Positions 17,801 through 56,685 of a stretch of 64,000 bases of DNA are shown piece after piece. The notes beneath the pieces were generated by a model. It saw only the letters and a program-made list of their open reading frames with translations, was not told the origin of the DNA and made no database searches. Numbering within the stretch: the first letter of the stretch is position 1; every line of letters begins with the position of its first letter. The stretch comes from Macrostomum lignano (Eukaryota): the NCBI GenBank assembly GCA_002269645.1, contig NIVC01002061.1:77838-141837 (forward strand), written 5' to 3'. The position numbers and the translations under genes are program-made.

Positions 17801-20800
17801 TCAATCCAGCAAAAAGCGCAGACTGTCGATTGCCTCCTTCCTGGAAACCAGTTCCCAGGTCGGAGGCAACTTTTTGATTCCTTTTCGATACTTAGCCTGC
17901 AGCTTGTCCTTAAATGTCCATGAGAACCAGTGCCAGAACTTTGCCGAATCGTTTCCTGCGTCGGGATCAATCTCCCACTCTGGAAAGTACTTTTTGTACT
18001 CTTTGTAAGGGTGATAGACTTCTTGTTTGCTGTCGGCACGACAGTTTGACGTCTGCTTACCCCTTCGCTTGCAAAAACCACATGAAAATCTGCCATCACT
18101 ACTAATTTCAAATTCACAATTATTGAATGCTAGCTGATCAATTCTAATATAATAAACACCATCCACTCCAGGTGGTCTGTGCTGAATGCAGCAATGCGGG
18201 CTGCCGTCTTTTTCGTGGTGATTTTCCTGAGACTTGCAGCACGGCTCGCTACAGAAAGGGCAGCGTTCTTTGCAGCCCCAAAGGCTCTGAAGCACATCGG
18301 AGTAGAGAGTGGAGTCTCCGTGCCATCTGACTGTTGACTCGTTCATACTAGCGAAGTGCTTTATTAGTGTGGATTTGAGGTCGCCCAGGCCGCCTAAAAG
18401 ATGTTTCAGCATGTCTTCCACTTTTACATTAGATTCGTAAGTGCAAACATGATATAAGTTTTTAGGAAGCACGGCGAGCTCTTTTTCGGCTTCTTTACAG
18501 AATTCATCGATCCAAACTTTCAGTGAGGTGCACCGAGTTGCCGCCACTCTTGCCGCTTCTTCAGTCACCGCAATTGTCGGCGCAATGAGCGATGACTCGA
18601 GATGGCCTGAAAATACACTGTTGCCATCCGATGTTCTCTGAAACAGCTGACGGTTAATGAACTGCGTCAGCCATTTCAGAGCAGTAGTATGGGAATCTCT
18701 CACGTATTCAAGGATCGATTCTGCGTCACGTCTCTGTGCCATGTCCGTTAGCATGCGAACAATGAGCTGGTACTTTGTCCTGCCGATCTCGTTCCGCATT
18801 ACTCCTCTCAATTTACCTGCCATTCTTTCCTGGAAAGCCTGTTTCATCACCGAGTACAGATGGTCACGAATAAAATCAGCCACCATCTTGGCTTCGGCCT
18901 GTCGGCGGACAATGTTTTCAAATAAGTTCAACATCTTTGTCTTCGTATCGGCCAGCTTTGTTTTGATGCTGTTGGCTTCGTAAAAATTCCGCGTAATCTG
19001 CTCAAATGTTGGGTATGCAGTGCGTAGGGCGAGGACCACTACCTTGATTTCGAATGCACGCGTTGTGCGGATATGATTGCTCGATAGTCTGAGAGAGGAG
19101 TTTACTGCATCACACACGTATTTTTGTATTCGATTAACGTGAACCTTAGAAACTCCTGTCAAGCCCCCCCTCATATCCTCGCAAAGACTTTGGACGGCCT
19201 TGAGAATGTCAGATACAAAGTCTACCACTAGCTTGCGTTCTTCTTTTTCTGGCTTACTGGAAACATAACTTTTTAATTGTTTGATTTTCAAACGTTCTGG
19301 TATGATGAGCTGAACAGTGTCTCCTTTAGGAAACAGTATTTCAGGTAAGCTATCACTTCGACCCGCTGATTGTCTCTTTAATGGCGTTTGCTCCAAAAAT
19401 ATGCCCACATATTTTTTTTCATTATAATAGATCTCTCGCAGTTGATCTACCACTTGACTTTCGATACTTCCGAAGTCGACTGTTCTCTCAGGTGGCAGCT
19501 GCTGCGCGAACTCCTGCCACAGAGCTTCGAATTCCTGCAGAATTTTTTCTGTTGAGCTGCTCTTTAGCGTGGGTGCAAGTTCGGTGGCCCGTCTTATGAT
19601 CTTAGACTCCCACTCCTCCGTCCGTGAACCTTGTTGAAGCTCAACTTTTTGCCCATCGCACAAGATTTGGAGTTTCTGCCGAAGTGACTGCTCAAGACTT
19701 TTGATGCAATCCCTTAAGGACACTAACTTTCGCTCCTTCCATTGTATTGTGTACTCACCGTACTGGTTTTCATAAAAAAATACGTTTAAGGACTTCAGAC
19801 CTTGCTGCTGCCAAGTTTCAAGCATAGCACGAAGCTCACTTATAGCCCTTTGCTGCACATCCGCGACAGCACTGACCGTTTCGCATTTCCTAACGGGAAT
19901 CGCTGCCGATTTATAAAGCCAGTCTTCGCTCAACTCTTCAATGTAATTTGTCACTTCGAGAAATTTGTTCTCCAGCATGTTGTAAGCCTTGAGTTCGACA
20001 CTGCTTTTAAAGCTGAACACAAAGTCCTCAGAAAGTATTGCCTTCCACAAATCATTTACTCGCTGAGAAAAGTCGCTGAATCCTAGATAGCTTTTCTGTT
20101 CTTTATCAAGAATATGCAAAAGGTGCTGCTTAATCTCCTGAACACCCATCGAGTAACCCGGATTCACTGGAGCCATGGGAGGGTCGCCTTGTAACAGATC
20201 TGACATAAAGAAAATATCCGTGTCTCTGTTGAACTGCAGAATGTCTCCGAAACGCTTCACGTCATGGAGACCTTCTCCTTCTGCAGCTTCCTTCGTCATG
20301 TGGTCGAGTTTCTGTTGTATCTTGAATGTCGCTTCCTGCATCATCTCTTTTGCTCCAGCCGCTGCTACATTCTGGTGTATGAAGATGCAGTGTCTGTGCA
20401 GATCTCGATCTTTGTTTGCCATCTTCATCCTGATGAAGGCGTGAATCGCGATCTGCAGAATCTCATTCATCTCCGCAGCGTTCTCTCCTTTGATGTTGAT
20501 GATGGTCACGTCGCCCAGTCCGATGACCAGTGTAGCCAGCTCGTTGTCATGATGATGCTTGTCCAGACCCAGCTCCGGAGCTCTCAGACCCTCGGTGTCG
20601 AGCACAGCGACATAGTCGAAAGGCATTCCCGACTCCACAGGAACTAGCTGCAGAAATGCGCCTCGAGTGCAGCGACCTGCGCTCACTGCGAACTTCAGTC
20701 CGAACATGGTGTTGAGCAGAGTGGACTTGCCTGAGCTCTGCAGACCGAGCACAGAGATCACGTAGATCTTCTTGTCACCGACCAGCTCCTGGCAGGTCTT

Positions 20801-23008
20801 GAGGATAGCAGAGATCCAGGCAGACGGGATGTTTCCAGCGTCGCCATCGAGAATCTCTAGAGGAACTCCGCACAGCAAGAGTTTGGCCATCACGCGTGGG
20901 ATCAGATTGATGTCAAGCGCTCGGAAAGTCTTTGTACTTTCTGAAGAGGCAGCTAAAATGGCCTCGTAGAATTGGCCCGCCTCTCTGAATATGTTTTCGA
21001 GGCCAATTGAAGCAAGCAGTATTTGATGGCCAAGTTCGGTGAGCTGATCATCAATTGCGGTCTGTGATGATTCATCCGCAATTTCTTTACGCTGCCGCAA
21101 TTCCTTCTGCATTTTTCTAAGCCTTGGCAAATGCTCTCTAGAAGAAGTGTCGAAGAAAGATCGAATGCACTGAAGCCAAAGCTTAACCAGAAGCTCATTG
21201 TCAGCAATCTTTGTCAGTGTGGTAAGAAACTCCTCCATAATGGGACTGAGTTGATTGCAGAGACCCATTTGCTGACGTCTGGCATTGAGACGCTGATGCT
21301 GAGCTTCCAACTTGTCTTCATCTGTTGCCTTAGAAGAGTTTTCTTTTTTGTAGTGGCGACTGTAGTCCATCCATTTTTCTTGCAAAGGAAGATGTTCTTT
21401 CCTTAAGTTCATCATTCCGCTCTTCGATACTTCCCCAAAGATGGAGCTGCAAAGCTGGCTTGCCTGAGAAACGAGAGAGCCGTCATCAAAGTCAACTTTG
21501 ATTTCTCCGATAGGTTTCTGCTCGGCGCCAACCTTTGCCAATGTCTCTGAAAGTCTTTGTTGAATTTCGCCAACTATTTCACGCTCTGGTTTTTTTTTCT
21601 TTGTGTCAACGCAGGAAAATGATTTAAGGGTACTCAACAACTCGCTGCTCAGCGGATTTGCGAGTGTCTGAGATCTGTAGAGAACCACTATCACTTCTAA
21701 TTCCTTCATTTTTGACATGCTTTGAAGCTGACTAAAGCACTCGGGCTGTGAAAGGGTGCTGACGTCCACAAAGACAACCACAACTTCGGAAGCTGAAGTT
21801 AAAACATGAGATTTATCTGCAAAATCCAGCAAGTCACCTCTGAGGTTTGTTGCCAAGAAGGCTCGAGTCAGTTTAATGTTTCTGGACGGCAGAAACACGG
21901 TGGCCTCAACGAGTCCGTTGCTGCAGACTCTGCGCGCGTGGCCGTTGGTGCAGTCTCTGTGGAAGAACGTCTCATGACTGCTGCCATTGAGTAGGGAGTT
22001 CAGCAACTTGGACTTCGACACAGGCAAATCTCCGATCCTCACAAATGATACCACCGGGAAATGATAGTCTGACATCAGGCTGGTCTCTATGTACTGGCCA
22101 TTTTCGTTTATGAACTGAACTACAATGTCTTTCAGGCTCCAGCTGCTCATGACCAGAGGCTTGTCAACAGTTGAATAGATGAATGGGAAAGCCAGCTTGC
22201 AAGCAAACAGAGCTTTGCAGAGCATTTGTTGCACCTCTTTGTCACAGCAGAGGTAGCTCGCAAGCAAAATATCTATCGGGTTCAGCTCATTCTCAGAGCT
22301 GCCTTCTTCATCGTCCTCGAGGTTTAAAAGTGACATTTCATCTGATGCCGTCGTCTCTGGAACCAAATTTCTTCCCTGTGCGTCGCAGCTGAGGAGTGCG
22401 CGGATGACTTGCCAGGCAACGGAGTTTTCCTTCAAATTTTTGCGCTCGTCCTGGCTTCTTTTGACGAAAAGAACGTCCTTGCGCGGGATTCTCTCTGGAT
22501 AATAAGACTCCAGCTCGAGACGTTCAACAGTTTCTTGAACTGATCCAAATTTTATTGGCTTTCTCGGTTCTGCAACTCCTGAGGTCGTTGGCTGTGGGTT
22601 GACAGTTGGTTCATCTGGCATCGAGCCTTGTCTTTTTGAATGTGTAGGAAATGGTGCTGGTGTTTCAAGTCTTGGCATTGGTCTTGGGGATAGCGATGGT
22701 TGAGTAGTCGACGATGGACCCGAGTCTTTCTGTACAATTTTATGCAGCTTATTAAAGAGGTCCGTCAAGGCTTGGTTGCTTTCTTCATCTCCCGCAAGCC
22801 TCCTCACCAGCGCATAGTCGATAGCTTCTAATGAGTCCAAGGTAGCAATATTTTTCTCTCTTAAGTACAGCTCTATAATGTTCAGAAACTCAGTGGATGC
22901 AAATTCGGGATGCTTTTCCGAAAGCATTTCCTTGGCGTTCAATGCAGCACTTGATAGACCGACTTCTTCTACATCTAAAATTGTCAAATGGAAATTTCTG
23001 ATTGGCAT
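17801..23008 (-). CDS. GVIN1-like: Very large inducible GTPase (VLIG/GVIN family), GVIN-A; main exon probably starts at the phase-1 acceptor 22974
   Basis: 1735-codon ORF with G1 GLQSSGKSTLLN, G2 RCT, G3 DTEG, HQNV, URGCP/GVIN-type FFHRDC...NGLVE region and C-terminal CPFCSEPC/HCCIQHRP. Two candidate acceptors: TTTTATACAG|c-ATG (23010) and TTGACAATTTTAG|AT (22975). Confidence 0.95.
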   Translation of the reverse strand: MPIRNFHLTILDVEEVGLSSAALNAKEMLSEKHPEFASTEFLNIIELYLREKNIATLDSLEAIDYALVRRLAGDEESNQALTDLFNKLHKIVQKDSGPSSTTQPSLSPRPMPRLETPAPFPTHSKRQGSMPDEPTVNPQPTTSGVAEPRKPIKFGSVQETVERLELESYYPERIPRKDVLFVKRSQDERKNLKENSVAWQVIRALLSCDAQGRNLVPETTASDEMSLLNLEDDEEGSSENELNPIDILLASYLCCDKEVQQMLCKALFACKLAFPFIYSTVDKPLVMSSWSLKDIVVQFINENGQYIETSLMSDYHFPVVSFVRIGDLPVSKSKLLNSLLNGSSHETFFHRDCTNGHARRVCSNGLVEATVFLPSRNIKLTRAFLATNLRGDLLDFADKSHVLTSASEVVVVFVDVSTLSQPECFSQLQSMSKMKELEVIVVLYRSQTLANPLSSELLSTLKSFSCVDTKKKKPEREIVGEIQQRLSETLAKVGAEQKPIGEIKVDFDDGSLVSQASQLCSSIFGEVSKSGMMNLRKEHLPLQEKWMDYSRHYKKENSSKATDEDKLEAQHQRLNARRQQMGLCNQLSPIMEEFLTTLTKIADNELLVKLWLQCIRSFFDTSSREHLPRLRKMQKELRQRKEIADESSQTAIDDQLTELGHQILLASIGLENIFREAGQFYEAILAASSESTKTFRALDINLIPRVMAKLLLCGVPLEILDGDAGNIPSAWISAILKTCQELVGDKKIYVISVLGLQSSGKSTLLNTMFGLKFAVSAGRCTRGAFLQLVPVESGMPFDYVAVLDTEGLRAPELGLDKHHHDNELATLVIGLGDVTIINIKGENAAEMNEILQIAIHAFIRMKMANKDRDLHRHCIFIHQNVAAAGAKEMMQEATFKIQQKLDHMTKEAAEGEGLHDVKRFGDILQFNRDTDIFFMSDLLQGDPPMAPVNPGYSMGVQEIKQHLLHILDKEQKSYLGFSDFSQRVNDLWKAILSEDFVFSFKSSVELKAYNMLENKFLEVTNYIEELSEDWLYKSAAIPVRKCETVSAVADVQQRAISELRAMLETWQQQGLKSLNVFFYENQYGEYTIQWKERKLVSLRDCIKSLEQSLRQKLQILCDGQKVELQQGSRTEEWESKIIRRATELAPTLKSSSTEKILQEFEALWQEFAQQLPPERTVDFGSIESQVVDQLREIYYNEKKYVGIFLEQTPLKRQSAGRSDSLPEILFPKGDTVQLIIPERLKIKQLKSYVSSKPEKEERKLVVDFVSDILKAVQSLCEDMRGGLTGVSKVHVNRIQKYVCDAVNSSLRLSSNHIRTTRAFEIKVVVLALRTAYPTFEQITRNFYEANSIKTKLADTKTKMLNLFENIVRRQAEAKMVADFIRDHLYSVMKQAFQERMAGKLRGVMRNEIGRTKYQLIVRMLTDMAQRRDAESILEYVRDSHTTALKWLTQFINRQLFQRTSDGNSVFSGHLESSLIAPTIAVTEEAARVAATRCTSLKVWIDEFCKEAEKELAVLPKNLYHVCTYESNVKVEDMLKHLLGGLGDLKSTLIKHFASMNESTVRWHGDSTLYSDVLQSLWGCKERCPFCSEPCCKSQENHHEKDGSPHCCIQHRPPGVDGVYYIRIDQLAFNNCEFEISSDGRFSCGFCKRRGKQTSNCRADSKQEVYHPYKEYKKYFPEWEIDPDAGNDSAKFWHWFSWTFKDKLQAKYRKGIKKLPPTWELVSRKEAIDSLRFLLD

Positions 23009-24769: not shown

Positions 24770-24919
24770 CGGCTTGAAAGTTGACCCTCTTAACGTCGGC
24801 CGCCGTCGTCCTCTTGAGTCCAATTTTGTTTCCAAACTTAGCGCTGTAGCACCTCTCGCAGAAGATGTCGCCCTGCGCTACGAACAATTTTGTCACTTGA
24901 AGCTGTGCGTTGCATTCTC
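24770..24919 (-). CDS. LIM-domain exon 2 (second zinc finger), phase 1-1
   Basis: Acceptor CCTTTCACAG|; reads (G)ECNAQLQVTKLFVAQGDIFCERCYSAKFGNKIGLKRTTAADVKRVNFQA, i.e. CRP/CRIP-like C..L.......G.IFC..CY..KFG; candidate donor GCCG|GTAGAT (weak, 3' boundary less certain). Confidence 0.85.
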
Positions 24920-26808: not shown

Positions 26809-29800
26809 TTAAATAAGACCTTGAAGACTTTCAATGGCAGCACACTTTGAAACCAATCGCCATTCTGGCGGAATCCGATCCATCCTGATTCCTTTGGTTC
26901 GTTCCAGCTCCTCCTTGAAGCGCCACACGAACCATTTCCAAAACACTGCGTCCGAATTTCTCTCGTCTGGGGGGATATCCCAGTCTGGGAAGTACCTTCG
27001 GTAAGCAGAATAGCGGTGTTGGTAGTTTGGATCGAAATTGCGCTGGACGCAGTTCTCCGATGGCTTAGTGCTATATTGGCACGCTGAGCAGGAAAACGTG
27101 ATTCTTCGAGGTCCAGTGTCAAGATGCAGCCAGGATCCGCAAGTTTGAGCCATAAACTCCCTTGTTGCCACCCAGTGCCAGCCGGAGACTCCCTGTGGTC
27201 TGTGCTGCACGCAGTGATGCGGACTGCCATCAATGTCAAAATGGTGCAACAAAGACTTGCAGCACGGCTCTCTGCAGAATGGGCATTGCTCCTTGCAGCC
27301 CCAAATTTTGCTGAGCACAGATGAGCACAAATCTGTTTCACCGCAAACAACTTCTTTAACATTCCGGACATTTGAATAGTGTTGCATCAGACGACTTTTC
27401 AGATTGCTTATTTCAGAGACTACAGTGCGAACAACTTCCTCCAAATTTGCTGATTTATAACTTTTCAGCTGAACCAGATCATTTGAACCAAACTGAATGT
27501 CAGCTGGCATGAGGGAAGGAAGCTTTTCAATCCACTCTTGAAAACTTTTCGATTGAGCTGCAGAATCTTGTATCGATCTTTTTGCACTTTCCAGCTGCGG
27601 GTCAATCAGTGACTTAACTATTGTTATAAGTTCAATGCCAGCCTGGCTACTGTGCCCTAGAAATGTAGCATTAATGTACTGATCAAGCCAGTAGAAAGCA
27701 CTTTCATATGGTACAGCGATGTATTTAGCCAGTGAGTCGAAGTCCTCTCTATCTGCCATGTCTTTCAGCATGCACACAATCAGATGGTATTTTGTCCTCC
27801 CCAAATCATTCAAGATCCTGCTTCGTAGGTCAGCTCCGACTTTCCAATCAGTCAACCGAATCACCAAAGCGCGCAGATGGCCCATGAAATACTCAGCCAC
27901 GATTTCACTGTCGCATTTTCCTTGGACTGTGCTCTCAAACAGTCTCCACATTCGTTCTTTTGAGTCTGCGAGTTTTGCTTTCTGACCGCTTTTATCAACA
28001 AACCTTCTGTCCATTGCGACAAGGTGTGGAAAGGCGAATCTGAATGCAATGACTGTCAGTCTTATTTCCAACTCGTTAGTGAGTCCAATCCACTGCTCTC
28101 TAAACTTCTCTGACGCTAGTTTTTGCAAACCAACACGAATCATTTGATGAATTGTTGGGATGTCTGAGCCCTTCTTTGCAAGTTCAACAACTGCTTTAAC
28201 TAGTTCTTTGCTTTCGGTCAGTACTGTGACAGACCTGTTCTTTTTTGCATCTGCTGCGTTTGATAACGGTTTAGTTCCGCATTTCGAGTCGCCTTCTATC
28301 GATGCGTAAAGGGTAGATCGATTTGGCACAAGACTATGTTCCACTACATTTTCGATTGACTCATCAGGTTTCAATGAAATTGGGGATTCCCGAAGAACAT
28401 CGTCGAGGGTGCGACCCTCGCTTGAGTAAAATTGCTTTAGGTGGTCTACTATCATTTTTTCTATCACAAGTCGTTTATTTTTTGGCTGAGATGCAAACTG
28501 ACTTTCTAATTGCTTCCAAAGTTTGTCAAACTCTTCGCGAATTTGTTTAGCTGAAACGTTCTTTTGTCTTTTAGTCAATTCATTCCCTCTTGCCACCACC
28601 ATCTGTTCCCATTTCTGCTGCTGAAAACCCTGCTCTAACTCCTCTCTCTGCTCGCTGCACATCGCTTCCATTTTTCTGTGTGTCTCAAGTTCAAGGTTGC
28701 GAAAGCTGTGTTTGAGATTCTCCAACGTTTTTTCTTGGAAATGCAGCACGTACTCTCGGTATGGGCTTTCGTTGAAAAACCTTTTTAAAATGTCCGACGT
28801 GTCCTTAAATTCTTTCATGAGAAATTCTGTCAGATTCGCTTTGGATCTTGCTAAAGTCTCAGCAATCAACTCGCATGTTGAACACACTCGAATGGCATTG
28901 GCTACGGTACTCTGCAGCCATTCCTCTAAGCGGTCTTCAACATCGCCCATTGTTTTTAGGAGTCTTTTTTCAAGTCTGATATATGCTTTCCGCTCAATGC
29001 TATTCCTAAAACTGAACACAAAGTCCTCAGACAGTATTGCCTTCCACAAATCATTTACTCGATGAGAAAAGTCGCTGAATCCCAGATAGCTCTTCTGTTC
29101 TCGATCAAAAATGTGCAAAAGGTGCTGCTTAACCTCCTGAACACCCATCGAGTAGCCTGGATTCACTGGAGCCATGGGAGGGTCGCCCTTTAACAGATCT
29201 GATATGAAGAAAATATCCGTGTCTCTGTTGAACTGCAGAATGTCTCCGAAACGCTTCACGTCATTGAGACCTTCTCCCAATGCAGTTTCTTTCGTCATGT
29301 CGTCAAGGGTTTGATGCATTTTGAATGTCGCTTCCTGCATCATCTCTTTTGCTCCAGCCGCTGCTACATTTTGATGAGCAAAAATGCAACGCCGTTTTAT
29401 GTTAATCATTCTGTTTGCCATCTTCATCCTGATGAAAGCGTGAATCGCAATCTGTAGGATATCCTTCATCTCTGCAGCGTTCTCTCCTTTGATGTTGATG
29501 ATGGTCACGTCTCCAAGTCCGATGACCAGTGTAGCCAGCTCGTTGTCATGGTGATGCTTGTCTAGACCCAGCTCGGGAGCTCTAAGACCCTCGGTGTCGA
29601 GCACAGCGACATAGTCGAACGGCATTCCCGACTCCACCGGAACCAGCTGCAGAAATGCGCCTCGAGTGCAGCGACCCGCACTCACTGCGAACTTCAGTCC
29701 GAACATGGTGTTGAGCAGAGTGGACTTGCCTGAGCTCTGCAGACCGAGCACGGAGATCACGTAGATCTTCTTGTCACCGACCAGCTCATGGCAGCTCTTG

Positions 29801-32312: not shown

Positions 32313-32781
32313 CTGGAATGAAAAATGGCAAAGCCAGTGGGCCAGCTGCTAGTTGCTACTAATATCAGATTAACAATTGGTCAGTTCACGTGCCTATATT
32401 TTCCATAAAAACCTGGTGCAAAAGGTATTGAACATTGATTTTGATTTCTACGACAAAAGGCGGTGCTAAAATTGTTTTAGCAATTTCAGCGCCAATTACA
32501 CAATTTTATACATCAGAGGGCTATGCGCTGGAAACAGAATCTTTCAATTATCCCATCTTCTGATCAAATGAATTGATGAAATTAATTCGAAACTTTGAAG
32601 CTTCCAAACTGGTACAACTGCGCTTGTGCCAGTGTGTGCCTGTCAAACTGCGCGTGTCCATGTGTAAAAATTAAAATTTGCGCTTGTGGATGTGTCTTTC
32701 TGTGTCTATTTCCAGGAAATATGTCTATATTTTTATAGAGAAGTCTTTACTATTGCTTTCGACCTTAAGTCTACATCTAAC

Positions 32782-43668: not shown

Positions 43669-43939
43669 TGTTGGAAATGACAAGCTAAGGCGAGCAATTG
43701 CTATGAGACGAGAATACGATAGCTCTGAGCCAATGCTCCGTGCGAAACTATTTATTATCAACGATAAAGCACGAACCCGCGACAACCCCCCAACCCAGGA
43801 CTAAAACTCACCGCACTGCACATTAGAGCACGATGACAATAATAACTTGATACGTACACTCAGACTGAACAAAAGTACAAGCACCAGTGAAATAAGCAAT
43901 CAAATAATAAACAGTGCGAAGCCCCGCCCAAGCCTAACA
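43669..43939 (-). repeat. 3' LTR
   Basis: TGTTGGAAATG...CCTAACA; preceded on the minus strand by purine-rich GTGGGGAGCAG (PPT candidate, 43940-43950). Confidence 0.97.
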
Positions 43940-44008
43940 CTGCTCCCCACAAAAAGCAGACAAAATTCAAAGACAGTCACTTGAAATCCCCACAGTCAAT
44001 TTCACTCA

Positions 44009-45480: not shown

Positions 45481-47589
45481 ACTCCACTCGAACACCCCGT
45501 CCGCCCGGCGAAGTTCCTGCAAAGGCCGGCACTTCTCAGCAAAATTGGGGACCAACCGACCGTAAAACTGGGCCAGTCCCAGAAACCGCTCGAGGTCCTT
45601 CTTGTTCTTTGGAGCTTCCACATCCTGAATCCGCTGAACCATGCCAGGATCTGGCTTGATCCCTTCCTCATCTATTATGTGGCCAAGAAACTTCAAACTG
45701 GGTGCTTCCATGATGCACTTTGCTTCATTGACTTTAACATTTGCCGCTCTCAGCTTGTCGAGTATTCCTGTGCGAATGTTCTCCAGCTCTGCCTTCGTCA
45801 CCGCGCCCATGAGGACGTCATCTTGGTACACAATGACACCTGGATGTTCGCCTAGCAGCTTCTCTATCTCACGCTGGAACACAGACGGAGAGACTTTGAT
45901 GCCGTACGGCAGCCTATTGAAGCGATAACAGCCAAATGGAGTGTTGATGGTGGTGATGTCTTTAGACTCACTGTCCAGCGGTATTTGATAATAGGCATCA
46001 GAAAGGTCAAGACGGCAAAACAGCTTGTTGTTGGCCATCTTGGAAAACGCTGTCTCTATTGATGGAGTCAGGTATGTCTGATCCTGCACCCACTGATTGA
46101 TTGCTGTGTAGTCTCCGCAAATCCTCACTGACGTCTTGTCTGACTTAACCGTCACCACAATCGGGCTGCCCCACTCCGACGATGTCACTCTCTCGACTAT
46201 TCCCGCCTTCTCCATCAAGTCCAGCTCCTTTTTTACTAACGGACGCAGCGCCGATGGCAGCTCTCTGGCTGGCTGGAAGATCGGCCCGGCTCCTGTCTTC
46301 AACCGAATCTCTCCGACTGCTCCCTTAATACCCAGTAAGCTCTCATACCTGTTGCTGCTGGGTGCCTTGGCCTCATCAGAATGGTGAGCTGGCGGCGAGT
46401 TGAGCAAATCCCGGCCTAGCAGTCCAAACTTTTGCTGGCAGTCGATGACAGGCAACTCAGCGGCAATGAAGTGACCGTCCGTGCCGTCAGTCTCCACCAG
46501 GCACTCCAGGATGCCGAGCTGCTTCATCACATGACCGTCGTAGGCCAGCATCCGGGACTTCGCCGATTTCAGTGGCGGTCTGCCAAGATCTTCCCAGATC
46601 TTTCTTGATATCAGCGAGCACGCCGCACCGCTATCCTTCTCCATCTTCACCTGCTTGTCGTTGATCTTGACCATGCAGAAAGCAGCCGGGGTGCCCTCAC
46701 CGCAGTGGAAGACGGGCTCATAACTGGTAGAATCTGCAGACATTGCTTTTTCTGCGGCGAAGTGAGTTTTGGCGCTCCTGCAGACTCGGGCGAAGTGTCC
46801 GAGTTTTCCGCACTGACGACAGGTGGCTTTCAGCGCCCAGCAGTCAGTTGGCTTGCGATGAGACTTCTGGCCGCAGCGCTGGCAGATCTGGCTTCCACTC
46901 AAATTCGGTCTCGACTTCTCCACCGCATTGACACCGGCCGCGTCTTCGAGGTCCCGGCGTGGCGCATCGTGGCTAGGCGCCGTCTGGTGCACCACTGAAC
47001 CAACTTGAGCCTGGCCTAACGCAGTCAGCGGCCCAGTCAAGAAGGTGCTCACCATCTGTAGCTGCTGCACATAGTCTGAAATCTGGTCCACCGAAAGCTC
47101 CGACGAAACCTCACGTTCGAGCACTTTGCTTCTGATGTCCTGATTGCTGAGGCCAGCAATCAGTCGCATTTTGATCAGCTGCTCTGCTGGGTTCGCACCC
47201 TCGTCCTTTAGCTTCTCGAACTCACACACCACTGCCTGTTCTCGAAGACGGGCAGCGAAGCCGGTGATGCTCTCACCCTCGCCCTGGCGCATGGACATGA
47301 AGGCCGCCCGCACCGAAATTAGCAGCCTTTTCTGGGGTTCCAGAAATCGAACCAGGCACGCTTTGATGTCGGCCCACTTCATCTTAGAAAGCTGGCTCGG
47401 TGCCACCAGCTGCTTCACTTTGATTAGCTGAGCCACGCCCAGACAGCCCAGAAAAGCGTCTGTCAGTGCCAGGTTTCCGTCGGTGTCCTGCACTCCTTTT
47501 GACCTCGCTTGAGCATCGAAGACTTCGACCCGTGCCCACAGCTCTTCAATACTTTCCAGTGGCAGTGGGTCTCGTAGCTTGATAGACAT
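45463..47589 (-). CDS. Gypsy gag-protease-RT polyprotein (ATG at 47589), terminates prematurely after the RT thumb
   Basis: Two CCHC knuckles (CQRC..SH, CRQCGKLGHFARVC), protease DSG (MEKDSGAACS), RT LDLSDAYYQ / RLPYGI / YQDD, then FEWS followed by a frameshift stop. Confidence 0.93.
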   Translation of the reverse strand: MSIKLRDPLPLESIEELWARVEVFDAQARSKGVQDTDGNLALTDAFLGCLGVAQLIKVKQLVAPSQLSKMKWADIKACLVRFLEPQKRLLISVRAAFMSMRQGEGESITGFAARLREQAVVCEFEKLKDEGANPAEQLIKMRLIAGLSNQDIRSKVLEREVSSELSVDQISDYVQQLQMVSTFLTGPLTALGQAQVGSVVHQTAPSHDAPRRDLEDAAGVNAVEKSRPNLSGSQICQRCGQKSHRKPTDCWALKATCRQCGKLGHFARVCRSAKTHFAAEKAMSADSTSYEPVFHCGEGTPAAFCMVKINDKQVKMEKDSGAACSLISRKIWEDLGRPPLKSAKSRMLAYDGHVMKQLGILECLVETDGTDGHFIAAELPVIDCQQKFGLLGRDLLNSPPAHHSDEAKAPSSNRYESLLGIKGAVGEIRLKTGAGPIFQPARELPSALRPLVKKELDLMEKAGIVERVTSSEWGSPIVVTVKSDKTSVRICGDYTAINQWVQDQTYLTPSIETAFSKMANNKLFCRLDLSDAYYQIPLDSESKDITTINTPFGCYRFNRLPYGIKVSPSVFQREIEKLLGEHPGVIVYQDDVLMGAVTKAELENIRTGILDKLRAANVKVNEAKCIMEAPSLKFLGHIIDEEGIKPDPGMVQRIQDVEAPKNKKDLERFLGLAQFYGRLVPNFAEKCRPLQELRRADGVFEWSSARCC

Positions 47590-47596
47590 GCATGCA

Positions 47597-47614
47597 ATCC
47601 TGCTTGCGACGCCA
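47597..47614 (-). promoter_or_regulatory. Primer binding site, probably tRNA-Ser
   Basis: TGGCGTCGCAAGCAGGAT 3 nt after the 5' LTR; complement ATCCTGCTTGCGACGCCA has T-stem CCTGC, 7-nt acceptor strand, G discriminator and CCA. tRNA identity is inference. Confidence 0.75.
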
Positions 47615-47617
47615 AAA

Positions 47618-47888
47618 TGTTGGAAATGACAAGCTAAGGCGAGCAATTGCTATGAGACGAGAATACGATAGCTCTGAGCCAATGCTCCGTGCGAAACTAT
47701 TTATTATTAACGATAAAGCACGAACCCGCGACAACCCCCCAACCCAGGACTAAAACTCACCGCACTGCACATCAGAGCACGATGACAATAATAACTTGAT
47801 ACGTACACTCAGACTGAACAAAAGTACAAGCACCAGTGAAATAAGCAATCAAATAATAAACAGTGCGAAGCCCCGCCCAAGCCTAACA
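47618..47888 (-). repeat. 5' LTR
   Basis: 271 bp, differs from the 3' LTR at two C/T sites (TATCAAC/TATTAAC, CATTAG/CATCAG). Confidence 0.97.
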
Positions 47889-50285: not shown

Positions 50286-51110
50286 ATGCAAGCGCAAAGC
50301 TTGCAGTCCAAGGCGCAGATTCGAGAGCTACTGCGCCAGTTCGCCCCGGATCTAGACTCGTCTGAGTGGGCAGGTACTCTCTTTGGGCATCTAAAAAGGC
50401 ATAAGATCAATGAGCTGTCACTGCTGTCTCCCGAGTCCGACTACAGCACTCTCGAAGAGAATGCAGAGACAGAGGAAGAAGCCAGAGCGTTAATTGCTTT
50501 TCTAGAAGCCATGCGTACCAGTGCTGGGGAACGGCAAGCGGGCGCCAGCCAGGTAGATTCTGCAATTCCAAGCGGAAAAACTCCTTCAGCGCCACCGGTG
50601 CAAACAGATTTTATTCACTGGAATCCCCAAGCAAACCAGCCATACTGGCCCACCGGTATGCACGGCTATCACCCAAATATGCCGATGGGCCCGCCGTTTC
50701 ACCAGCCATTTCCAATGGACTGGCAACGTTTCAACTTTCCAGCTCAACAGCCAGCACCTGCAGGAAAAAATGAGGGCGAATCAACTGGACAGCAGGTCCC
50801 TGTGGGTCAGCAGTTCTACCACCTAGGCCACCTAGGGACTATGCGACAGCATGGCCAACCAACTGGACAGCAGGTTCCTGTGGGTCAGCAGTTCTACCAC
50901 CAAGGCCAGCTAGGGACTATGCGACAGCATGGCCAACCAACTGGACCGCAGGTTCCTGCTGTTCCACTTTCTTCCACAATGCCGCTACCATTTTCTGGAC
51001 ATCCAGACAATCATCACTACATGCATCCACAGTTGAACTACTTTGGCCAGCAGCCTTACTTGGAATCGCAGTTCCACGGTCAAATGAATCATCAAATGCA
51101 GCAGAGTCAA

Positions 51111-51145
<35 letters not shown>

Positions 51146-54100
51146 ACAAATATTCGTCAAAAGCAATGAACAACGTCATAAGGCAGAAGTTTTTGAAGAT
51201 AGCTCAGAAACCTGCATCCCTGACAGCGATCCGAAGCTTTCTGAGCAGTCCGTAGCTCTCAAGAAGCCTGGTTATCAGACAGGACACGTTCCTGCAGGCT
51301 TAGAATATTCAAGTAAGCAAGTGGCACCACTAGAAACGCCCTCTCAGTCGGACCAATTTCAACAGTATCAAGAACAGACGGCAAAATTTGCGACTGAATC
51401 GTCAAAAGGCAGTCTATACCCGCAAATTAATCCAGAAAGAACTGACGAAAGGGAGGTCACCAGTGCTGGGGAAGATCGTCAAGAAGAAGTATTCGATGAT
51501 AGTCAGCCGCAAAGTAATGAGGCAGTGTCAAAGCCAGAAAAGCCAAAGAAAACTAAATTTCCCCTGTTTAAACGATTTTCGAAGAAATCGAAAAAAGAAG
51601 AGGCAACAGATGAGCAAGGCACAGAACAGCAAGAAGCTGTCAGTAAATCTTGTACTGGTAATCAACTGGACGAAATGACTAGGTCTGGCCGTCGATCCTT
51701 AGTTGAAAGCGGCAGTCTGCCCACTGAAAAATCAAAGAACGAAAGAGGCTCGACAATAGAGAGGAATGGTCAAGCTCAATCCCGTCGAAGTCAAGTAAAA
51801 ACACACCAGAGAAACCTGGTTTCCGAGCTGTACTTGACTGAGTATTTCCCAGAGAAAATTCGTCTGTGCCAATTAGCCAAAATTGTCGATATAAAACCAA
51901 TGGACCAACCGGTTGAAGTAAAGAAACAACGGAGCATCTTCAAAAGCCTTCTACGAGCCTCTATTCGAGCAAAAAAGAAGAAAGGGGACAATGCGCTTGC
52001 ATGGAGCTTGCTAAGAGGACTGATGAGCTATGATGGGACAGTCAGAGACCTGGTCCCGAAAACTAATTCACCGAATAAGCCGTCCGCCAGCAGAATGCTG
52101 CTGGAAGAAGATGATGATGCTGATTTGGATGACGCCTTGAATCCAATAGATATTCTCATAACATGTTACCAGTGCTGTGATAAAGAGGTGCAACAGGTTC
52201 TGTGTAAAATTTTGTTTGCCTGCAAACTGGCATTTCCATTCATTTTTTACAATGGAAAATCGCTGACAATGAGCCACTGGAGCTTAAGAGACATTGTTGT
52301 GGAGTTTCGCGACCAAAACGACACTTACGTATCCACAAGTCTCATATCTGATCAAAAGTTTAAAGTCGTTTCCTTTGTTAGAATCGGAGAGCTGCCCGAG
52401 TCAAAATCTCGCCTGCTCAACTCTCTCCTGAACGGAAATGACCATGCAACATTTTTTCACAGGGACTGCACCGGTGGGCATAGTCGCAGAGTTTTAAGCA
52501 ACGGGCTTGTCGAAGCAACAGTCTTTCTGCCCGTTTCCAGCCGCAAGTCATTTGAAGCACCGTTTCTAGCGGCAAACTTGCGGGGCGACTTGCTTCAGTT
52601 TAGCCAACAAGCGGGGATCTTGAGTGAAATTTCACAAATAGTGGTTGTGTTTATCGATGCGCAGAGCTTTGTTAATCCTGAGTGCTTTACGCTGCTACAA
52701 AAACTCGAAACAAGACTTACGCTTCTCCTTGTCTTGTACAAGACAGAAGCAACCACAATTTCGAAGGCTGAGTTTCGCACCGAGCACGAAGCTTTTCTGC
52801 AGCGCAACGGTAGTGTTTTTGCGTTTAGAAAAAAGGGCAGGAAGAGTGAAAGAGAGGTGTGCTCAGAAATAGAACTCATTCTGAACGCCCAAATTTGCAA
52901 ATGCGAGGGTTTTCAGATGGAAAAACTCGAAATTCGGCGCGCAAACTTGGATGAGAGCGAAAAAGTATCGCAAACAAAGCGTTTGTCTCTGGAAATAATG
53001 AAATATTTTGTCTCTGAGAAATCAGCTCAATTTAAACAGAAGCATCTGCCATTGCAAACCTTATGGCTGGAGGTCAGCAAGCTCTACAAGGTGGAGAACG
53101 CTGCAAAAACAGCTCAAACAGATCAACTGATTAGCCAAAAAATGAGAATGGAAAAGAGAAGTGCACAGCTTAGGATTTGTGAAAGACTGAGCGAGTTCAT
53201 CATCGTTTTTGTGAAATCCTTGTTAAATTTAATAAAAAGCGAAGATGCTGAACTCGCAGTAAAACTTCTGCTGCAATGGATGAAACTAACGTTCGACAAT
53301 AAGTCAAGGAAACTATTGCCTCAGCTGCAGAAGAAATGCAACGAGCTTCGGGATCATACGCAAAATAGACGAAAGCTGGATTCTGATCCTATAGTCACAT
53401 TAGCCTCTGTACAGAAAATTACACTAGATGCTTCAGTCGGACTCGAAAATGTGTTTCGAGAAGTTGGCCAAATTTTTGAAGCCTCTAGTGGAAATCCAAA
53501 CCGTGTTCCTCGAAGTCTCCTAAATTTTGTACAGCCGCTACCGAAATTGTTTGCTCAGTTGCTTCTTTGGGGAGTCCCCTTGGAGTTTTTGGATGGCGAC
53601 GCTGGAAACATCCCGTCTGCCTGGATCTCTGCTATCCTCAAGAGCTGCCAGGAGCTGGTCGGTGACAAGAAGATCTACGTGATCTCCGTGCTCGGTCTGC
53701 AGAGCTCAGGCAAGTCCACTCTGCTCAACACCATGTTCGGACTGAAGTTCGCAGTGAGCGCAGGTCGCTGCACTCGAGGCGCATTTCTGCAGCTGGTTCC
53801 GGTGGAGTCGGGAATGCCGTTCGACTATGTCGCTGTGCTCGACACCGAGGGTCTGAGAGCTCCGGAGCTGGGTCTGGACAAGCATCACCATGACAACGAG
53901 CTGGCTACACTGGTCATCGGACTGGGCGACGTAACAATAATTAACATCAAGGGCGAAAACTCAGCCGAGATGAAGGATATCCTACAGATCGCGATTCACG
54001 CCTTTATCAGAATGAAGATGGCTAACAGGATGAGGATTTGCACAGGCACTGCATCTTCATCCACCAAAATGTTCCTGCAGTTGGAGCTAAAGAGCTGATG

Positions 54101-56685
54101 CAGGAGGCAGCATTCAAAATGCAGCAGACACTGGACACTATCACGAAAGAGGCAGCTGAGGGAGAAGGTTTGCGTGGTGTCTGCGGCTTCACTGACATTA
54201 TTTCATTTGAAAAAGAGTCCGACATTTTTTACATGTCAGACCTTTGGCAGGGCGACCCTCCGATGGCTCCAGTGAACCCTGGATACGCACAGAAGGTGTC
54301 GGCTATCAAAGACTATTTGCTACATCTTCTTGAAGGGGAAAGAAAGCACTTTCTCAGCTTTCCCGAATTCTCCTGCCGTCTCGCCGATCTTTGGAAAGCA
54401 ATCCTATCTGAGGATTTCGTCTTCAGTTTCAAGAACACCATACAGCTAAAGCCTACAGCCAAATGGAAGCAGAGTTTTTCGAGGCAAAAAATCTCATGGA
54501 ACAAGCTGCAGAAGAATGGCTTAACAGGGAGGCGTCAATTCAGATAAAAAAGTGCCGTGATGTTACCGAGCTTTGCAAAGTTCGGGAGCAAAATTTGAGT
54601 GAACTTCAAGGCCTCGTCAGTAAACACCTGGAAAGTAGCCGAAGCCGACTTGAGAAGTTTTTCGAGGAGGGCCAATACAGCGAGTATGCAATTGAGTGGA
54701 AGGAACGAAAAATTATTGCTTTGCAAAACTTCTCCAAGGATCTGCAACAAGAAATGAAGAAAAAGCTTTTCATCATGACGGAGCGCCACAAAGCTGACAC
54801 CGAAAGGGAGCGGAAAAATGCAGAGATGGAGCGTCGGATCCTCGCAAAAGCAAAAAATCTAGCAAAGCAGTTTCGAGGTCAAAACTTGGATGTGCAGTTT
54901 TTGAAACGAGGGTTTGAAAGGGAATGGCAAATGTTCATGGATGACCTGCCTGTTGAGTCAACCGACGAGACACAGCGTATCGAAACGCAAATTGTTTTAT
55001 GTCTGGAGGAACTTTATGAAACCAACATTAAGATGTTGCGCTATTATCTTGAAAAAAAACCAATAAATTCTGGTGAAGATAGACTTGCTGTTTTGACGGA
55101 GTTTTTAAATGAAGAAGAGAATTCTTTTCAGTTGATTCAGGTCCAACCTTCAAGTGTTCAACGTTTCACTCAAGGAGTTAAAAATTTGTTATCTGGAGCT
55201 GAAAATCGTTTGGATGAAGCAGATGAAGCTACAAAACAGGAAGTTCAAAAGTCCTGCAACAATATTTTGACATCAATCGCTCCAATTATAGATGATATGA
55301 AGAAACAGACCACAGGGTTTCAGAGACAGTTCGTTGTAGCGATTCAGAAAGCCATTCGGCTAGGAGTCGAGGAGCAAGTAAATGGAAAACTAGACAAGCG
55401 CGGCATTAGCTCAACACCAGCCCTTGAAATCAAACTTGTGACTCACGCACTGAGATTCACTTATCCAATTTTCATCGAAATGGATGAAAAATTTCACGAG
55501 GGGCAAAGTCTCAAAGCCAAATTGGCGCTGTCAAAAGATCAGATGTGGAACTTGTTTCAAAACATTGTTCAGCAGCACAACCATTCTAAAATTTCAGCAG
55601 ACTTTTGCCGAGATCATCTGGCCGTCGTTATCAAAGATGCTGTCAAAGCGCGAATGGAGAGAATCCTAAAAAGGCAAATAATTACCAATATCGGCACAAC
55701 AAAATACCAATTAATCGTCACGGTGCTCACTGACAAGGCTCGGAATGATGATTTCGATTCTATTATTCAGTACAGTCAGAATCCACACTCGTCAGCTCTT
55801 AAATGGGTAACGGATTTCGCAGAAAAGAGGCTATTTCACAAGAAGCGAACAGACAAAGATTCATTATTCTGTCATCTTATTCTATCCGAACTGGTGGATC
55901 CAATCTTAGAATCAATTAAAACTGCCGCAGAACTTTCAGCCAGCAGTTCAAAGAATCTTTCATCGTGGATCGATGGATTTTGCAAGGCCGCAGGAAATGA
56001 GCTTGCAGTTCTGCCTCGAAACCTGCAAAACATGTTGCAGTTCAAATCGGCCACCACTGGCGATATGAAAAGTTATTTGCTTGACGGTTTATTTAAGCTG
56101 AGATCGGATCTGCATTCCCACTACAATGCTGTCACTGAGAATTCTGTAGAGTGGCATGGAGAGAAAACTCTCTATGCAGACGTGATTCAGACTCTGTGGG
56201 GCTGCAAAGAGCAGTGCCCCTTCTGTAGAGAGCCGTGTCAGAAAGCTGACCCGAATCACTGCGAAACCGATGGAAGCCCTCATTGCTGCATTCAGCATCG
56301 ACCTAAGGCTGTTTGTGGGACGTATAAAATCAGTAACGATGAATTAAGCTTTAAAACATGTGAAAATTCTGTTAAAGGTGAATCTAAATTCACTTGTAAT
56401 GTGTGCAAACGAGAAGGGAAGACATCTGAATCATGTTCTTCCGACACAAGTCGCGCCGCACGTCGAGAAGTTCGGCATCCGTACAAGGAATACAAGAAGC
56501 AATTTCCAGATTGGGAGATCGTACCGGACGCAGCCAATGACTCGGCAAAATTCTGGATGTGGTTCTGCTGGACATATCAGCGGCAGCTACAGGAGAAGTG
56601 GCAGAAAGGACTCGGCCAGATCCCGCCCGCTTGGCAGGACGTCTCAAAGGAAGACGCCATCAACAGTCTTCGAGGTCTTCTGTAA
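50286..56685 (+). CDS. GVIN1-like: Very large inducible GTPase GVIN-C (2133 aa if two 1-bp deletions at about 54027 and 54450 are corrected)
   Basis: Three overlapping ORFs join into one VLIG: Q/P-rich N-terminus, FFHRDC...NGLVE, G1 GLQSSGKS, DTEG, then ANxDEDLHRHCIFIHQNV and LKAYSQMEAEF after adding one base each; C-terminal CPFCREPC. Acceptor CCATTTCAG| 9 nt before ATG. Confidence 0.88.
50782..50960 (+). repeat. In-frame 78-bp (26-aa) tandem repeat, about 2.3 copies
   Basis: CAACTGGAC starts at 50782, 50860, 50938; encodes TGQQVPVGQQFYH(L/Q)G(H/Q)LGTMRQHGQP; a (CAG)n poly-Q run follows at about 51113-51142. Confidence 0.93.

Follow-up and report, generated by a model that had tools for sequence, protein, structure and literature searches.

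The 64-kb window of the Macrostomum lignano genome analysed here (positions are counted from its first nucleotide) very probably harbours a small cluster of three genes, products of ancient duplication, that encode giant dynamin-like GTPases of the VLIG/GVIN/URGCP family, with a GVIN1-like layout and a converted G-core. Invertebrate members of this family have been annotated before, and the cluster is ordinary among them except for two details, namely a G-core that is near-identical through gene conversion and a LIM domain gained by one copy. The three paralogues, referred to as A, B, and C, are located as follows:

17801..23008, minus strand, giant ORF A (1735 aa)
26809..32331, minus strand, giant ORF B (1840 aa)
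50286..56685, plus strand, coding stretch of C, in three frames

A and B are arranged in tandem, B lying upstream of A, and C is oriented divergently (head-to-head) from B, with a gap of about 14 kb between B exon 1 (36251) and the start codon of C (50286). All three copies matched the Pfam models URGCP_GTPase (PF25683; E 1.6e-112, 5.7e-109, and 3.8e-89) and URGCP (PF25496; E 2.5e-48 to 1.4e-54), and GVIN1_C (PF26772) was found among the precomputed matches. In GenBank, A corresponds to Mlig019641.g2 (100% identical to model P0001) and B to Mlig019641.g1 (model P0003), and both carry the UniRef label 'VLIG-type G domain-containing protein'. The annotation of the genome is RNA-based, and the g1/g2 naming is explained there (PMC5730564); B and A are g1 and g2 within one RNA-defined transcriptional unit. 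A literature search for Mlig019641 gave no match. Outside the cores, the copies share about 20-40% amino acid identity, and dS is saturated.

An earlier note on this DNA had proposed three strongly diverged VLIG/GVIN giant GTPases in an invertebrate, two in tandem and one head-to-head, all of which is borne out by the ORFs and Pfam matches, the strands, the host, and the divergence values. Its description of VLIGs as vertebrate proteins is outdated, as homologues are annotated in mussel (Mytilus) and krill (Meganyctiphanes) and VLIG1/2 are known from prawn (PMC6805343). The locus was also described as TE-dense. It is indeed rich in repeats, comprising one young LTR element, an integrase fragment, foldback/MITE-like elements, and minisatellites, but this is not distinctive, since more than 50% of the Macrostomum lignano genome is repetitive (PMC5730564) and such density is the norm genome-wide.

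Architecture of the three copies

The main exons and domains were assigned as follows:

17801..22974, minus strand, A exon 3 (Mlig019641.g2): N-domain, P/S/T-rich linker, LG1, G domain, helical region, and Cys/His-rich GVIN1_C
22718..22972, minus strand, helical N-domain of A (alignment)
~21533..22285, minus strand, URGCP (LG1) domain of A
~20150..21346, minus strand, VLIG G domain of A
36230..36251, minus strand, B exon 1: 7-codon leader MAEGRDE, donor GTGAGT (GenBank model P0003)
26809..32312, minus strand, B exon 2 (Mlig019641.g1): N-domain, acidic linker, URGCP domain, G domain, and C-terminal region
32041..32310, minus strand, helical N-domain of B (alignment)
~30532..31317, minus strand, URGCP domain of B
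~29149..30237, minus strand, G domain of B
50286..50540, plus strand, helical N-domain of C (alignment, AF2 model)
50775-50958, plus strand, 78-bp x2.4 tandem repeat of C
51113-51143, plus strand, (CAG)10 run of C
~52137..52982, plus strand, URGCP domain of C

In each copy, a helical N-domain is followed by a disordered linker, the URGCP domain, a helical region, the VLIG G domain, a long helical region, and GVIN1_C. The VLIG G domain is canonical (GLQSSGKS, DTEG). The URGCP domain is a degenerate G-fold in which GxxxxSKS and NLRG, both invariant in the alignment, replace GxxxxGKS and DxxG. With an AF2 model of this domain (pLDDT 71.5), the best PDB matches obtained by Foldseek were an interferon-inducible antiviral protein (7e59), GBP1, and the G domains of Rab and EF-Tu (E 3e-5 to 1e-3).

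The N-domain of about 85 amino acids is homologous in A, B, and C according to the alignment and consists of four helices, as modelled by AF2 for the C copy (pLDDT 80). No relatives outside Macrostomum were detectable by a profile search against 1.8 billion representatives, and a fold search yielded no significant match. The linkers differ in length and composition, as the earlier note had described for the N-terminal regions. That of A comprises about 75 variable amino acids and is P/S/T-rich, that of B comprises about 165 amino acids and is acidic (net charge -27), and that of C comprises about 440 amino acids and is Q/P/G/H-rich with tandem repeats. The mini-leader noted for B is the MAEGRDE exon, separated from exon 2 by an intron of 3.9 kb, and the Q/P/G-rich repeats noted for C correspond to the 78-bp repeat and the (CAG)10 run in its Q/P/G/S-rich linker. 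A 'YYPE/FPEK...W..LR' block is conserved before the URGCP domain in all three copies.

The G1-G3 core and the reading frame of C

Approximately 350 bp encoding G1-G3 are 92-100% identical in all copies, including those on another contig. The corresponding tracts are:

20512..20869, minus strand, conversion tract in A, from the G1 P-loop to past G3 DTEG (the A-B tract reaches 20017)
29520..29868, minus strand, conversion tract in B (the A-B tract reaches 29016)
53592..53928, plus strand, conversion tract in C

Among A, B, and C, dS amounts to 0.07-0.28 within the tract and is saturated elsewhere. At codons specifying identical amino acids, A and C use the same codon in 104 of 109 cases (95%) in the tract versus 274 of 668 (41%) outside (Fisher p 8e-30). 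GC3 is 0.66-0.73 in the tract versus 0.45-0.49 elsewhere, and the 5' boundary is sharp, with nucleotide identity rising from about 50% to about 97% across a few codons. Within the tract, A and C are at least as similar in nucleotide sequence as A and A2, a 90%-identical copy of A. This pattern indicates that the G1-G3 core has been homogenised by GC-biased gene conversion, which may persist merely because the core is the sole stretch similar enough for recombination. Thus, the 'conserved engine' of the earlier note stands with respect to conservation of the G core, but not as the product of selection alone.

It is highly improbable that the near-identity stems from extreme purifying selection or from mis-polishing of the assembly with short reads. 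No part of the family is more conserved than the G-core, which reaches 86% protein identity even in the unlinked paralogue P0004, and paralogous segments can become homogenised by polishing. However, identity extends to synonymous codons and changes abruptly at the boundary, the raised GC3 is expected under biased conversion, and dS of these ancient paralogues in the tract is similar to or lower than the whole-gene dS of the young A-A2 pair (0.205). Moreover, 3-9% of the tract positions differ among copies in a mosaic pattern, which collapse or polishing would not yield.

C aligns with A and B as a family member, as proposed, but its frame is broken twice. Because of two 1-bp deletions, it is read through three frames and not as one ORF:

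50286..54026, plus strand, segment 1 (frame 1): N-domain, Q/P/G/H-rich linker, URGCP domain, and first part of the G domain
54027..54028, plus strand, frameshift 1: 1-bp deletion relative to A and B after ...IRMKMAN (three-frame translation)
54029..54451, plus strand, segment 2 (frame 2): remaining G domain, PF25683 positions 315-396
54452..54453, plus strand, frameshift 2: 1-bp deletion after ...FKNTIQLK (three-frame translation)
54454..56685, plus strand, segment 3 (frame 3): helical region and Cys/His-rich C-terminus, about 740-743 codons, no stop

An in-frame TAA and a TTTCAG acceptor lie 5' of the ATG. C may have become a pseudogene recently or may owe its broken frame to assembly error; a pseudogene is likely. 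It is somewhat doubtful that C functions as an intact third gene with both frameshifts introduced by the assembly. The three segments stay open over 1247, 141, and 743 codons and align with A and B throughout without a stop, each deletion affects a single base at a dinucleotide run, and the assembly is PacBio-based (PMC5730564). On the other hand, the Mlig_3_7 assembly was polished using Illumina and 454 data (PMC5730564), read mis-mapping is unlikely at the second deletion, as its surroundings match the other copies at only about 70% identity, and a protein for C is absent from the RNA-based GenBank annotation.

The LIM domain of A and the N-terminal regions

A LIM domain at the N-terminus of A had been predicted in the earlier note and was found on two small upstream exons with GT-AG borders, taken from the RNA-based model P0001:

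25126..25249, minus strand, A exon 1: ATG (MEEGHPP...) and first half of LIM, donor GTAAGT (tblastn of P0001, splice sites, Pfam LIM)
24770..24919, minus strand, A exon 2: second half of LIM and CRP-like Gly-rich tail, acceptor CAG, donor GTAGAT (tblastn of P0001; CRP1/CSRP best PDB match)

Two lines of evidence join these exons to exon 3: the GenBank model, which carries the mark 'partial', and canonical splice sites. The domain scored above the Pfam cut-off (E 2.8e-8), its closest solved structure is CRP1 (E 4.5e-21), and it has an unusual C-x4-C spacing where the exons join (C5-C6). A third copy set (P0126) repeats the order B, LIM, A and has an intact LIM. At the A2 locus, LIM is degenerate: one zinc ligand is changed from Cys to Arg, and LIM exon 2 was not found there. 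About 40 linker residues of A2 and A3 are absent from A. A CRP/CRIP-type LIM domain was gained by the A lineage, and the N-terminal differences among the copies are in-place divergence of low-complexity linkers plus this one addition.

Between A and A2, dN/dS is 0.31 overall, 0.06-0.09 in the G domain, and highest along the gene in the linker (0.85); no window of the A-A2 comparison exceeded 1.

Possible function and comparison with known systems

The A, B, and C proteins would act as GTP-dependent self-assembling GTPases similar to GBPs and GVIN1. Mixed G-G dimers between paralogues may be possible because of the identical G-core, but this step is purely conjectural, and the lack of other sequence similar enough for recombination may by itself explain why conversion persists. 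The N-domain, linker, and LIM may determine localisation or partners. Human GVIN1 has been reported to be antibacterial in human cells, where it forms a coat on bacteria, and transcripts of prawn VLIG1 and VLIG2 rise after nodavirus infection (PMC6805343). By homology only, a cell-autonomous defence role is plausible, and the immune-effector reading is a reasonable one.

The earlier note went further in likening the locus to diversifying innate-immune arrays, with a conserved engine and interchangeable N-termini. Spelled out, this proposal would make the LIM, acidic, and Q/P/G-rich N-termini alternative targeting heads under positive selection. The prawn and GVIN1 data, the strongly unlike N-termini, the varying LIM status, the linker indel, and the peak of dN/dS in the linker are in line with this proposal, which we nevertheless consider improbable. 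The N-domain and the block preceding the URGCP domain are common to all three copies, and the variable part is a disordered linker and not a module; only the LIM of A is added. There is no sign of exchange of N-termini between copies, dS being saturated in the N-terminal part, and the linker ratio and indels fit near-neutral drift of a disordered region; diversification is not shown by the A-A2 comparison, in which no window exceeded 1. In addition, C, one of the three 'arms', is frameshifted. A housekeeping, non-immune role in membrane or cytoskeleton remodelling or in proliferation control, as proposed for vertebrate URGCP, with the GVIN1 likeness reflecting common ancestry only, appears rather unlikely, though less so than the array. 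The best Pfam models carry the URGCP name, purifying selection prevails overall and particularly in the G domain, the nearest solved G domains include membrane fusogens of the Sey1/atlastin type, A and B lie within an ordinary transcriptional unit, and flatworms are not known to have an interferon system. Yet the proteins have GVIN1_C and the complete GVIN1-like layout, multi-copy clusters with conversion, partial remnants, and a likely pseudogene fit birth-and-death families better than they do single-copy housekeeping genes, and invertebrate relatives respond to infection (PMC6805343).

For human GVIN1, a layout of N-terminal domain, unstructured linker, LG1, helical region, LG2, and C-terminal domain has been reported. 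The flatworm proteins share with it the URGCP, URGCP_GTPase, and GVIN1_C domains in the same order, the giant size, and an ORF located almost wholly on a single exon, and their G domain is about 45-50% identical to that of vertebrate members. In contrast to GVIN1, they occur in a host not known to have an interferon system; the flatworm N-domain is equivalent by position only, because it has neither detectable relatives beyond Macrostomum nor a significant fold match. URGCP (up-regulator of cell proliferation) is the non-interferon vertebrate member of the family. PF25496 and PF25683, the best-scoring models, are built around it, but the flatworm proteins have about double its length and possess GVIN1_C. 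By sequence, the nearest solved G domains are those of Sey1 (E 8.5e-6), GBP1, and GBP2. With the GBP/atlastin/Sey1 group, the flatworm proteins share the DTEG G3 motif, and their URGCP model matches a GBP-like structure and hGBP1; they differ in having two G-fold domains (one degenerate) and another, Cys/His-rich C-terminal domain, and in lacking both a CaaX box and a transmembrane anchor. CRP1, CRP2, MLP, and CRIP come closest to the LIM of A, the similarity including the Gly-rich tail. Unlike these LIM-only proteins of the CRP/CSRP and CRIP type, A combines just one LIM with a giant GTPase in a fusion, with a C5-C6 spacing of x4 instead of x2 that spans the exon junction. None of the approximately 300 relatives listed shows a LIM domain. 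VLIG/GVIN-like genes of other invertebrates (Mytilus, Meganyctiphanes, prawn VLIG1/VLIG2, and sea cucumber Gvin1-like) belong to the same family, exist without interferon, and have G domains at most 55% identical to those of the flatworm; in the literature examined, neither LIM fusion nor G-core conversion is described for them.

Gene structures and domain architecture of A, B and C

Three very long ORFs are located where the earlier note had placed them, and its arrangement of two tandem genes (A and B, minus strand) with a third head-to-head (C, plus strand) was confirmed. The GenBank models P0001 (BOX15_Mlig019641g2, 100% identical to A) and P0003 (BOX15_Mlig019641g1, which is B) come from the same contig, and the exons of A and B were assigned accordingly.

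Gene features of A, B and C
17801..23008, minus strand, long ORF of A, 1735 aa
25249..25126, minus strand, A exon 1 (GenBank model mapped back), ATG (MEEGHPP...) and first half of the LIM domain
24919..24770, minus strand, A exon 2, second half of the LIM domain and Gly-rich tail
22974..17801, minus strand, A exon 3 (GenBank model mapped back)
26809..32331, minus strand, long ORF of B, 1840 aa
36251..36230, minus strand, B leader exon, 7 codons, MAEGRDE
32312..26809, minus strand, B main exon, past a 3.9-kb intron
50286..54098, 54038..54547 and 54463..56685, plus strand, three overlapping ORFs of C
54027/28, plus strand, C frameshift 1, 1-bp deletion after ...IRMKMAN compared to A and B
54452/53, plus strand, C frameshift 2, 1-bp deletion after ...FKNTIQLK compared to A and B

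All exon borders of A and B are GT-AG and in phase, and the 7-codon exon of B is the mini-leader that had been proposed for this gene. The coding region of C begins at 50286, since this start codon comes after an in-frame TAA and after TTTCAG, which resembles a splice acceptor. The main exons measure 5.2, 5.5 and 6.4 kb; nearly the whole ORF is located on a single exon, and the proteins exceed 1,600 aa. The Mlig_3_7 annotation is RNA-seq-based, and the suffixes g1 and g2 denote genes that trans-splicing and poly(A) evidence separates within one 'transcriptional unit' (PMC5730564). The names thus place B and A in a single RNA-defined unit. A literature search on Mlig019641 yielded nothing.

All three genes match URGCP_GTPase (PF25683; Pfam E 1.6e-112 for A, 5.7e-109 for B, and 3.8e-89 and 7.1e-19 in two pieces for C) and contain the canonical G1 motif GLQSSGKS and G3 motif DTEG. 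The URGCP domain (PF25496) is located N-terminal to the G domain, with E values of 2.5e-48, 6.7e-52 and 1.4e-54 for A, B and C. Both sets of matches are far above chance; lesser Pfam matches were to RHD3, dynamin and GBP G domains. GVIN1_C (PF26772) occurs among the precomputed Pfam matches of P0001, P0003, A2 (P0002, a close copy of A on another contig) and the unlinked paralogue P0004, while this domain was assessed in C by alignment alone, comparing its Cys/His-rich end with those of A and B. The URGCP domain, modelled with 12 family sequences, reached a pLDDT of 71.5. Its best PDB matches in Foldseek (E 3e-5 to 1e-3) were an interferon-inducible antiviral (GBP-like) protein, hGBP1, and the G domains of Rab, EF-Tu and atlastin. 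Where G-x4-GKS and DxxG would be expected, it invariantly carries G-x4-SKS and NLRG. The G-fold matches of the model together with the altered motifs identify the URGCP domain as a degenerate G-fold whose position corresponds to that of LG1.

The wider VLIG family was recovered with a G-domain query. VLIG/GVIN-like genes appear in many invertebrate transcriptome papers. The premise of the earlier note that these proteins are interferon-induced GTPases of vertebrates is outdated, because such genes are annotated in molluscs and crustaceans and both A and B had previously been deposited in GenBank and UniRef, P0003 under the UniRef name 'VLIG-type G domain-containing protein'.

Each of the two deletions in C shifts the reading frame by one. 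The resulting segments of 1247, 141 and 743 codons are free of stops when read in the homologous frame, and their alignment with A and B continues right to the end. The lesions must accordingly be very recent if they are not errors of the assembly, and we lean towards real lesions. No C-type protein was found in the RNA-based GenBank annotation or in the searched databases, and the search for C orthologues returned no Macrostomum protein.

The locus had also been described as TE-dense. The density is evident in the window; it has no special meaning for the cluster, as such density is normal for a genome in which repeats make up more than half of the sequence and LTR elements 21% (PMC5730564).

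Repeats and other features of the window
2-928, plus strand, 309-codon open frame running off the window start, no Pfam match
24036-24458, A intron 2, palindromic MITE-like element, 81-nt arms (94%)
26419-26584, between the B 3' end and the A LIM exon, palindromic MITE-like element, 41-nt arms (95%)
32782-34764, B intron 1, foldback/TIR-like element of about 2 kb, 41-nt terminal inverted repeats (88%); long CT-rich/GA-rich inverted arms give spurious ORFs on both strands
40530-40901, B-C intergenic, 14/28/57-nt minisatellite, about 26 copies of GGGAATGATGCTGA
41681-41878, B-C intergenic, 76-nt repeat in 2.6 copies, 96-99% identical
43669..47888, B-C intergenic, LTR retrotransposon, 271-nt LTRs, 99% identical
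45463..47646, minus strand, gag/zinc-knuckle-protease-RT ORF of the LTR element
44009..45532, minus strand, RNase H tail and integrase ORF of the LTR element
48979-49374, minus strand, B-C intergenic, just beyond the LTR element, short retroelement integrase core fragment (rve_3, E 0.006) in GC-rich sequence
59962-60603, minus strand, downstream of C, HIT-domain ORF (PF01230, E 4e-21; DcpS_C, E 1.7e-15)

The LTR element is young. Its RNase H profile was matched in the last third only, so the stretch from RT to integrase has either lost an internal segment or changed frame. The neighbouring integrase fragment is probably the remnant of a second insertion. Judging by its Pfam matches, the ORF downstream of C is a HINT/DcpS-like gene unrelated to the cluster. 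Neither Rfam families nor tRNAs were detected in scans of the window.

N-terminal regions and related loci

The first 85 or so residues past the acceptor (A, B) or the start codon (C) align mutually and with A2, and share a common hydrophobic pattern. An AlphaFold model from this four-sequence alignment gave a compact four-helix domain (mean pLDDT 80), referred to as the N-domain. A profile search against 1.84 billion representative proteins yielded only the Macrostomum-type copies P0126 (a fused gene model), P0002 and P0003, and no wider N-domain family emerged from it. No PDB entry was matched significantly by Foldseek (best E 2.1); SAM domains reached just TM 0.4-0.5 at E above 3, a weak hint on which we do not claim a SAM-like fold. 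At a threshold of E <= 10, neither the three N-domains nor the last 740 aa of C had Pfam matches above noise. The N-domain is followed by a low-complexity linker that extends to the URGCP domain.

Linkers between N-domain and URGCP domain
A, 150 aa, P/S/T/E-rich
B, 251 aa, net charge -27
C, 541 aa, Q/S/P/G-rich, with a 26-aa repeat in 2.4 copies and a polyQ run

The final 75-100 residues of each linker form a conserved block (…YYPERI…W.VIRALL…), and the truly variable part is thus shorter. The 'interchangeable N-termini' of the earlier note accordingly give way to an alignable N-domain and a variable linker in all three genes, and the LIM domain of A is the sole genuinely added domain.

This LIM domain, which had been predicted, scored 34.3 bits against a gathering cut-off of 22.9 (PF00412, profile positions 1-58 of 58) on the two upstream exons of the GenBank model, and PF00412 is a precomputed match of P0001 as well. 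The nearest solved structures are CRP1 (E 4.5e-21), CSRP, MLP and CRIP. All eight zinc ligands are present (C-x2-C-x17-H-x2-C-x2-C-x4-C-x17-C-x2-C), the x4 spacing being atypical. The junction to A is a predicted one, made through in-phase GT-AG splice sites in an RNA-seq-based model marked 'partial'; the independent model P0126 likewise joins a LIM domain to an A-type gene, the third copy. None of the approximately 300 relatives with Pfam content listed has a LIM fusion.

A2 is 85% identical to A at the amino acid and 90% at the nucleotide level, and its linker is about 40 residues longer. Between A and A2, dS was 0.205 and dN 0.064, corresponding to an overall dN/dS of 0.31. By region, the G domain had a ratio of 0.06-0.09, part of the helical region one of 0.45-0.54, and the linker, which also has indels, one of 0.85. 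No 100-codon window exceeded 1 in this pairwise test, which has little power. These values correspond to purifying selection on A and A2, with a nearly neutral linker, and do not show the cluster to be 'diversifying'.

Copies of the cluster occur elsewhere. P0126 is a 3625-aa fused model comprising a B-type gene (88% to B), an intact LIM domain and an A-type gene (77-87% to A and A2); we infer the species and assembly of this copy set. A second set is located around A2 on contig NIVC01001902.1 (locus L001).

Features of locus L001
1-1891, plus strand, upstream, gene with a candidate HMG box in its first ORF and long polyQ/polyP tracts
6553..7188, plus strand, isolated 211-aa ORF coding for the G-core alone, remnant of a B-type gene upstream of A2
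7676-7792, plus strand, LIM exon 1 homologue upstream of A2, with Cys-to-Arg at a zinc ligand (CLRRGNG) and a 4-residue deletion
17058-18542, plus strand, downstream of A2, THAP/P-element-transposase-like gene (weak precomputed Pfam matches)

The THAP-like gene and the gene with the candidate HMG box make the surroundings unlike those of the window. No LIM exon 2 homologue was found at L001, where the LIM domain is decaying, while it is intact in the window and in P0126. As the order B-LIM-A recurs in P0126 and, with decay, at L001, it is ancestral to several paralogous clusters. Several such clusters are expected, because M. lignano is a hidden polyploid with a duplicated large chromosome (PMC5730564).

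Gene conversion at the G-core

Synonymous divergence among A, B and C is saturated nearly throughout and falls to 0.07-0.28 at ORF-A residues 712-832, where the three proteins are 100% identical and closer to each other than A is to its twin A2. Codon identity was compared inside and outside this tract by Fisher test, restricted to codons at which the two copies share a degenerate amino acid.

Conversion tracts and codon identity
20869..20512, minus strand, tract in A; the longer A-B tract reaches 20017
29868..29520, minus strand, tract in B; the longer A-B tract reaches 29016
53592..53928, plus strand, tract in C
A-C, identical codons 104/109 inside and 274/668 outside, p 8e-30
B-C, identical codons 100/106 inside and 236/577 outside, p 2e-27
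A-B (longer, 850-bp tract), identical codons 214/248 inside and 194/437 outside, p 6e-29

The tract spans the P-loop (GLQSSGKS), switch I and the G3 motif DTEG. Its 5' boundary at GVPLEILDGD is abrupt, with nucleotide identity rising from about 50% to about 97% within a few codons. In the remainder of the gene, identity to A is about 90% for A2 and about 50% for B and C; inside the tract, A-C and A-B identity is 55-60/60 per window, equal to or above that of A-A2 (55-58/60). GC3 is 0.66-0.73 in the tract compared to 0.45-0.49 in the remaining gene. The tract is also present in A2 and in the G-core remnant at L001. The local collapse of dS, the sharp boundary, the conflicting relationships and the raised GC3 strongly indicate recurrent, GC-biased ectopic gene conversion at the G-core; protein-level constraint or a polishing artefact would not give such marks.

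The G-core ORF at L001 is 96.7% identical to A and 92% to B at the nucleotide level, with a B-like 5' flank and an A-like 3' part. It is a truncated B-type gene, still in frame, that belongs to the conversion network, and it may be both donor and recipient. Frameshift 1 of C coincides exactly with the end of an ungapped match to A (53565-54027, 93%). This coincidence suggested that it marks the end of the conversion tract, but the codon-defined tract stops at about 53928, some 100 bp earlier; the proximity is therefore unproven, and the deletion may or may not have arisen in a conversion event.

Possible function and relation to known systems

The nearest solved G domains to LG2, the VLIG-type G domain of A, B and C, are those of the dynamin-superfamily large GTPases GBP and atlastin/Sey1. 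Human GVIN1 coats Burkholderia, and coat formation is known for human GVIN1 only. By analogy with these proteins, A, B and C may dimerise through their G domains in a GTP-dependent manner and build larger assemblies on membranes or on the surface of microbes, with the N-domain, linker and LIM domain setting partners or location. A defence role of the flatworm VLIG genes is plausible by comparison with prawn, in which VLIG1/2 rise 2.9-3.9 log2-fold upon nodavirus infection (PMC6805343). A housekeeping role like that of URGCP remains a live rival.

Identical G-cores might further permit mixed assemblies of the paralogues. In its full form, this idea holds that the G-core is kept identical for heterotypic G-dimers in mixed polymers carrying different N-terminal adaptors, a combinatorial, interferon-independent GVIN-type defence. 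A would contribute its CRP-type LIM domain as adaptor, B its acidic linker and C its Q/P/G-rich, prion-like linker; the LIM domain would link the coat to actin structures, and conversion would be selectively retained, preserving interface compatibility. We consider this full scheme improbable. A simpler reading is that conversion persists at the G-core because it is the sole stretch still similar enough to recombine.

Current views are not overturned by these results, as invertebrate VLIGs were annotated before and the virus response of prawn VLIG is known. In the papers that we read, we found no description of the CRP-type LIM fusion, the Macrostomum-specific N-domain or a conversion tract restricted to the G-core. 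The GC-biased conversion and the LIM fusion provide testable leads on paralogue cooperation and targeting. Both transgenesis and RNAi are available in M. lignano, and A, B and C could therefore offer a tractable system for giant-GTPase function. An interferon-independent VLIG is not a new idea, and a similar case for a pre-interferon or interferon-independent origin has reportedly been made recently for Mx. Compared to human GVIN1, the flatworm proteins display the same layout of N-domain, unstructured linker and LG1, the N-domain being matched by position. Thus, the complete GVIN1-type architecture, comprising N-domain, disordered linker, degenerate LG1, LG2 and GVIN1_C, appears to occur in a lophotrochozoan without interferon, and the locus supports an origin of the family before interferon.
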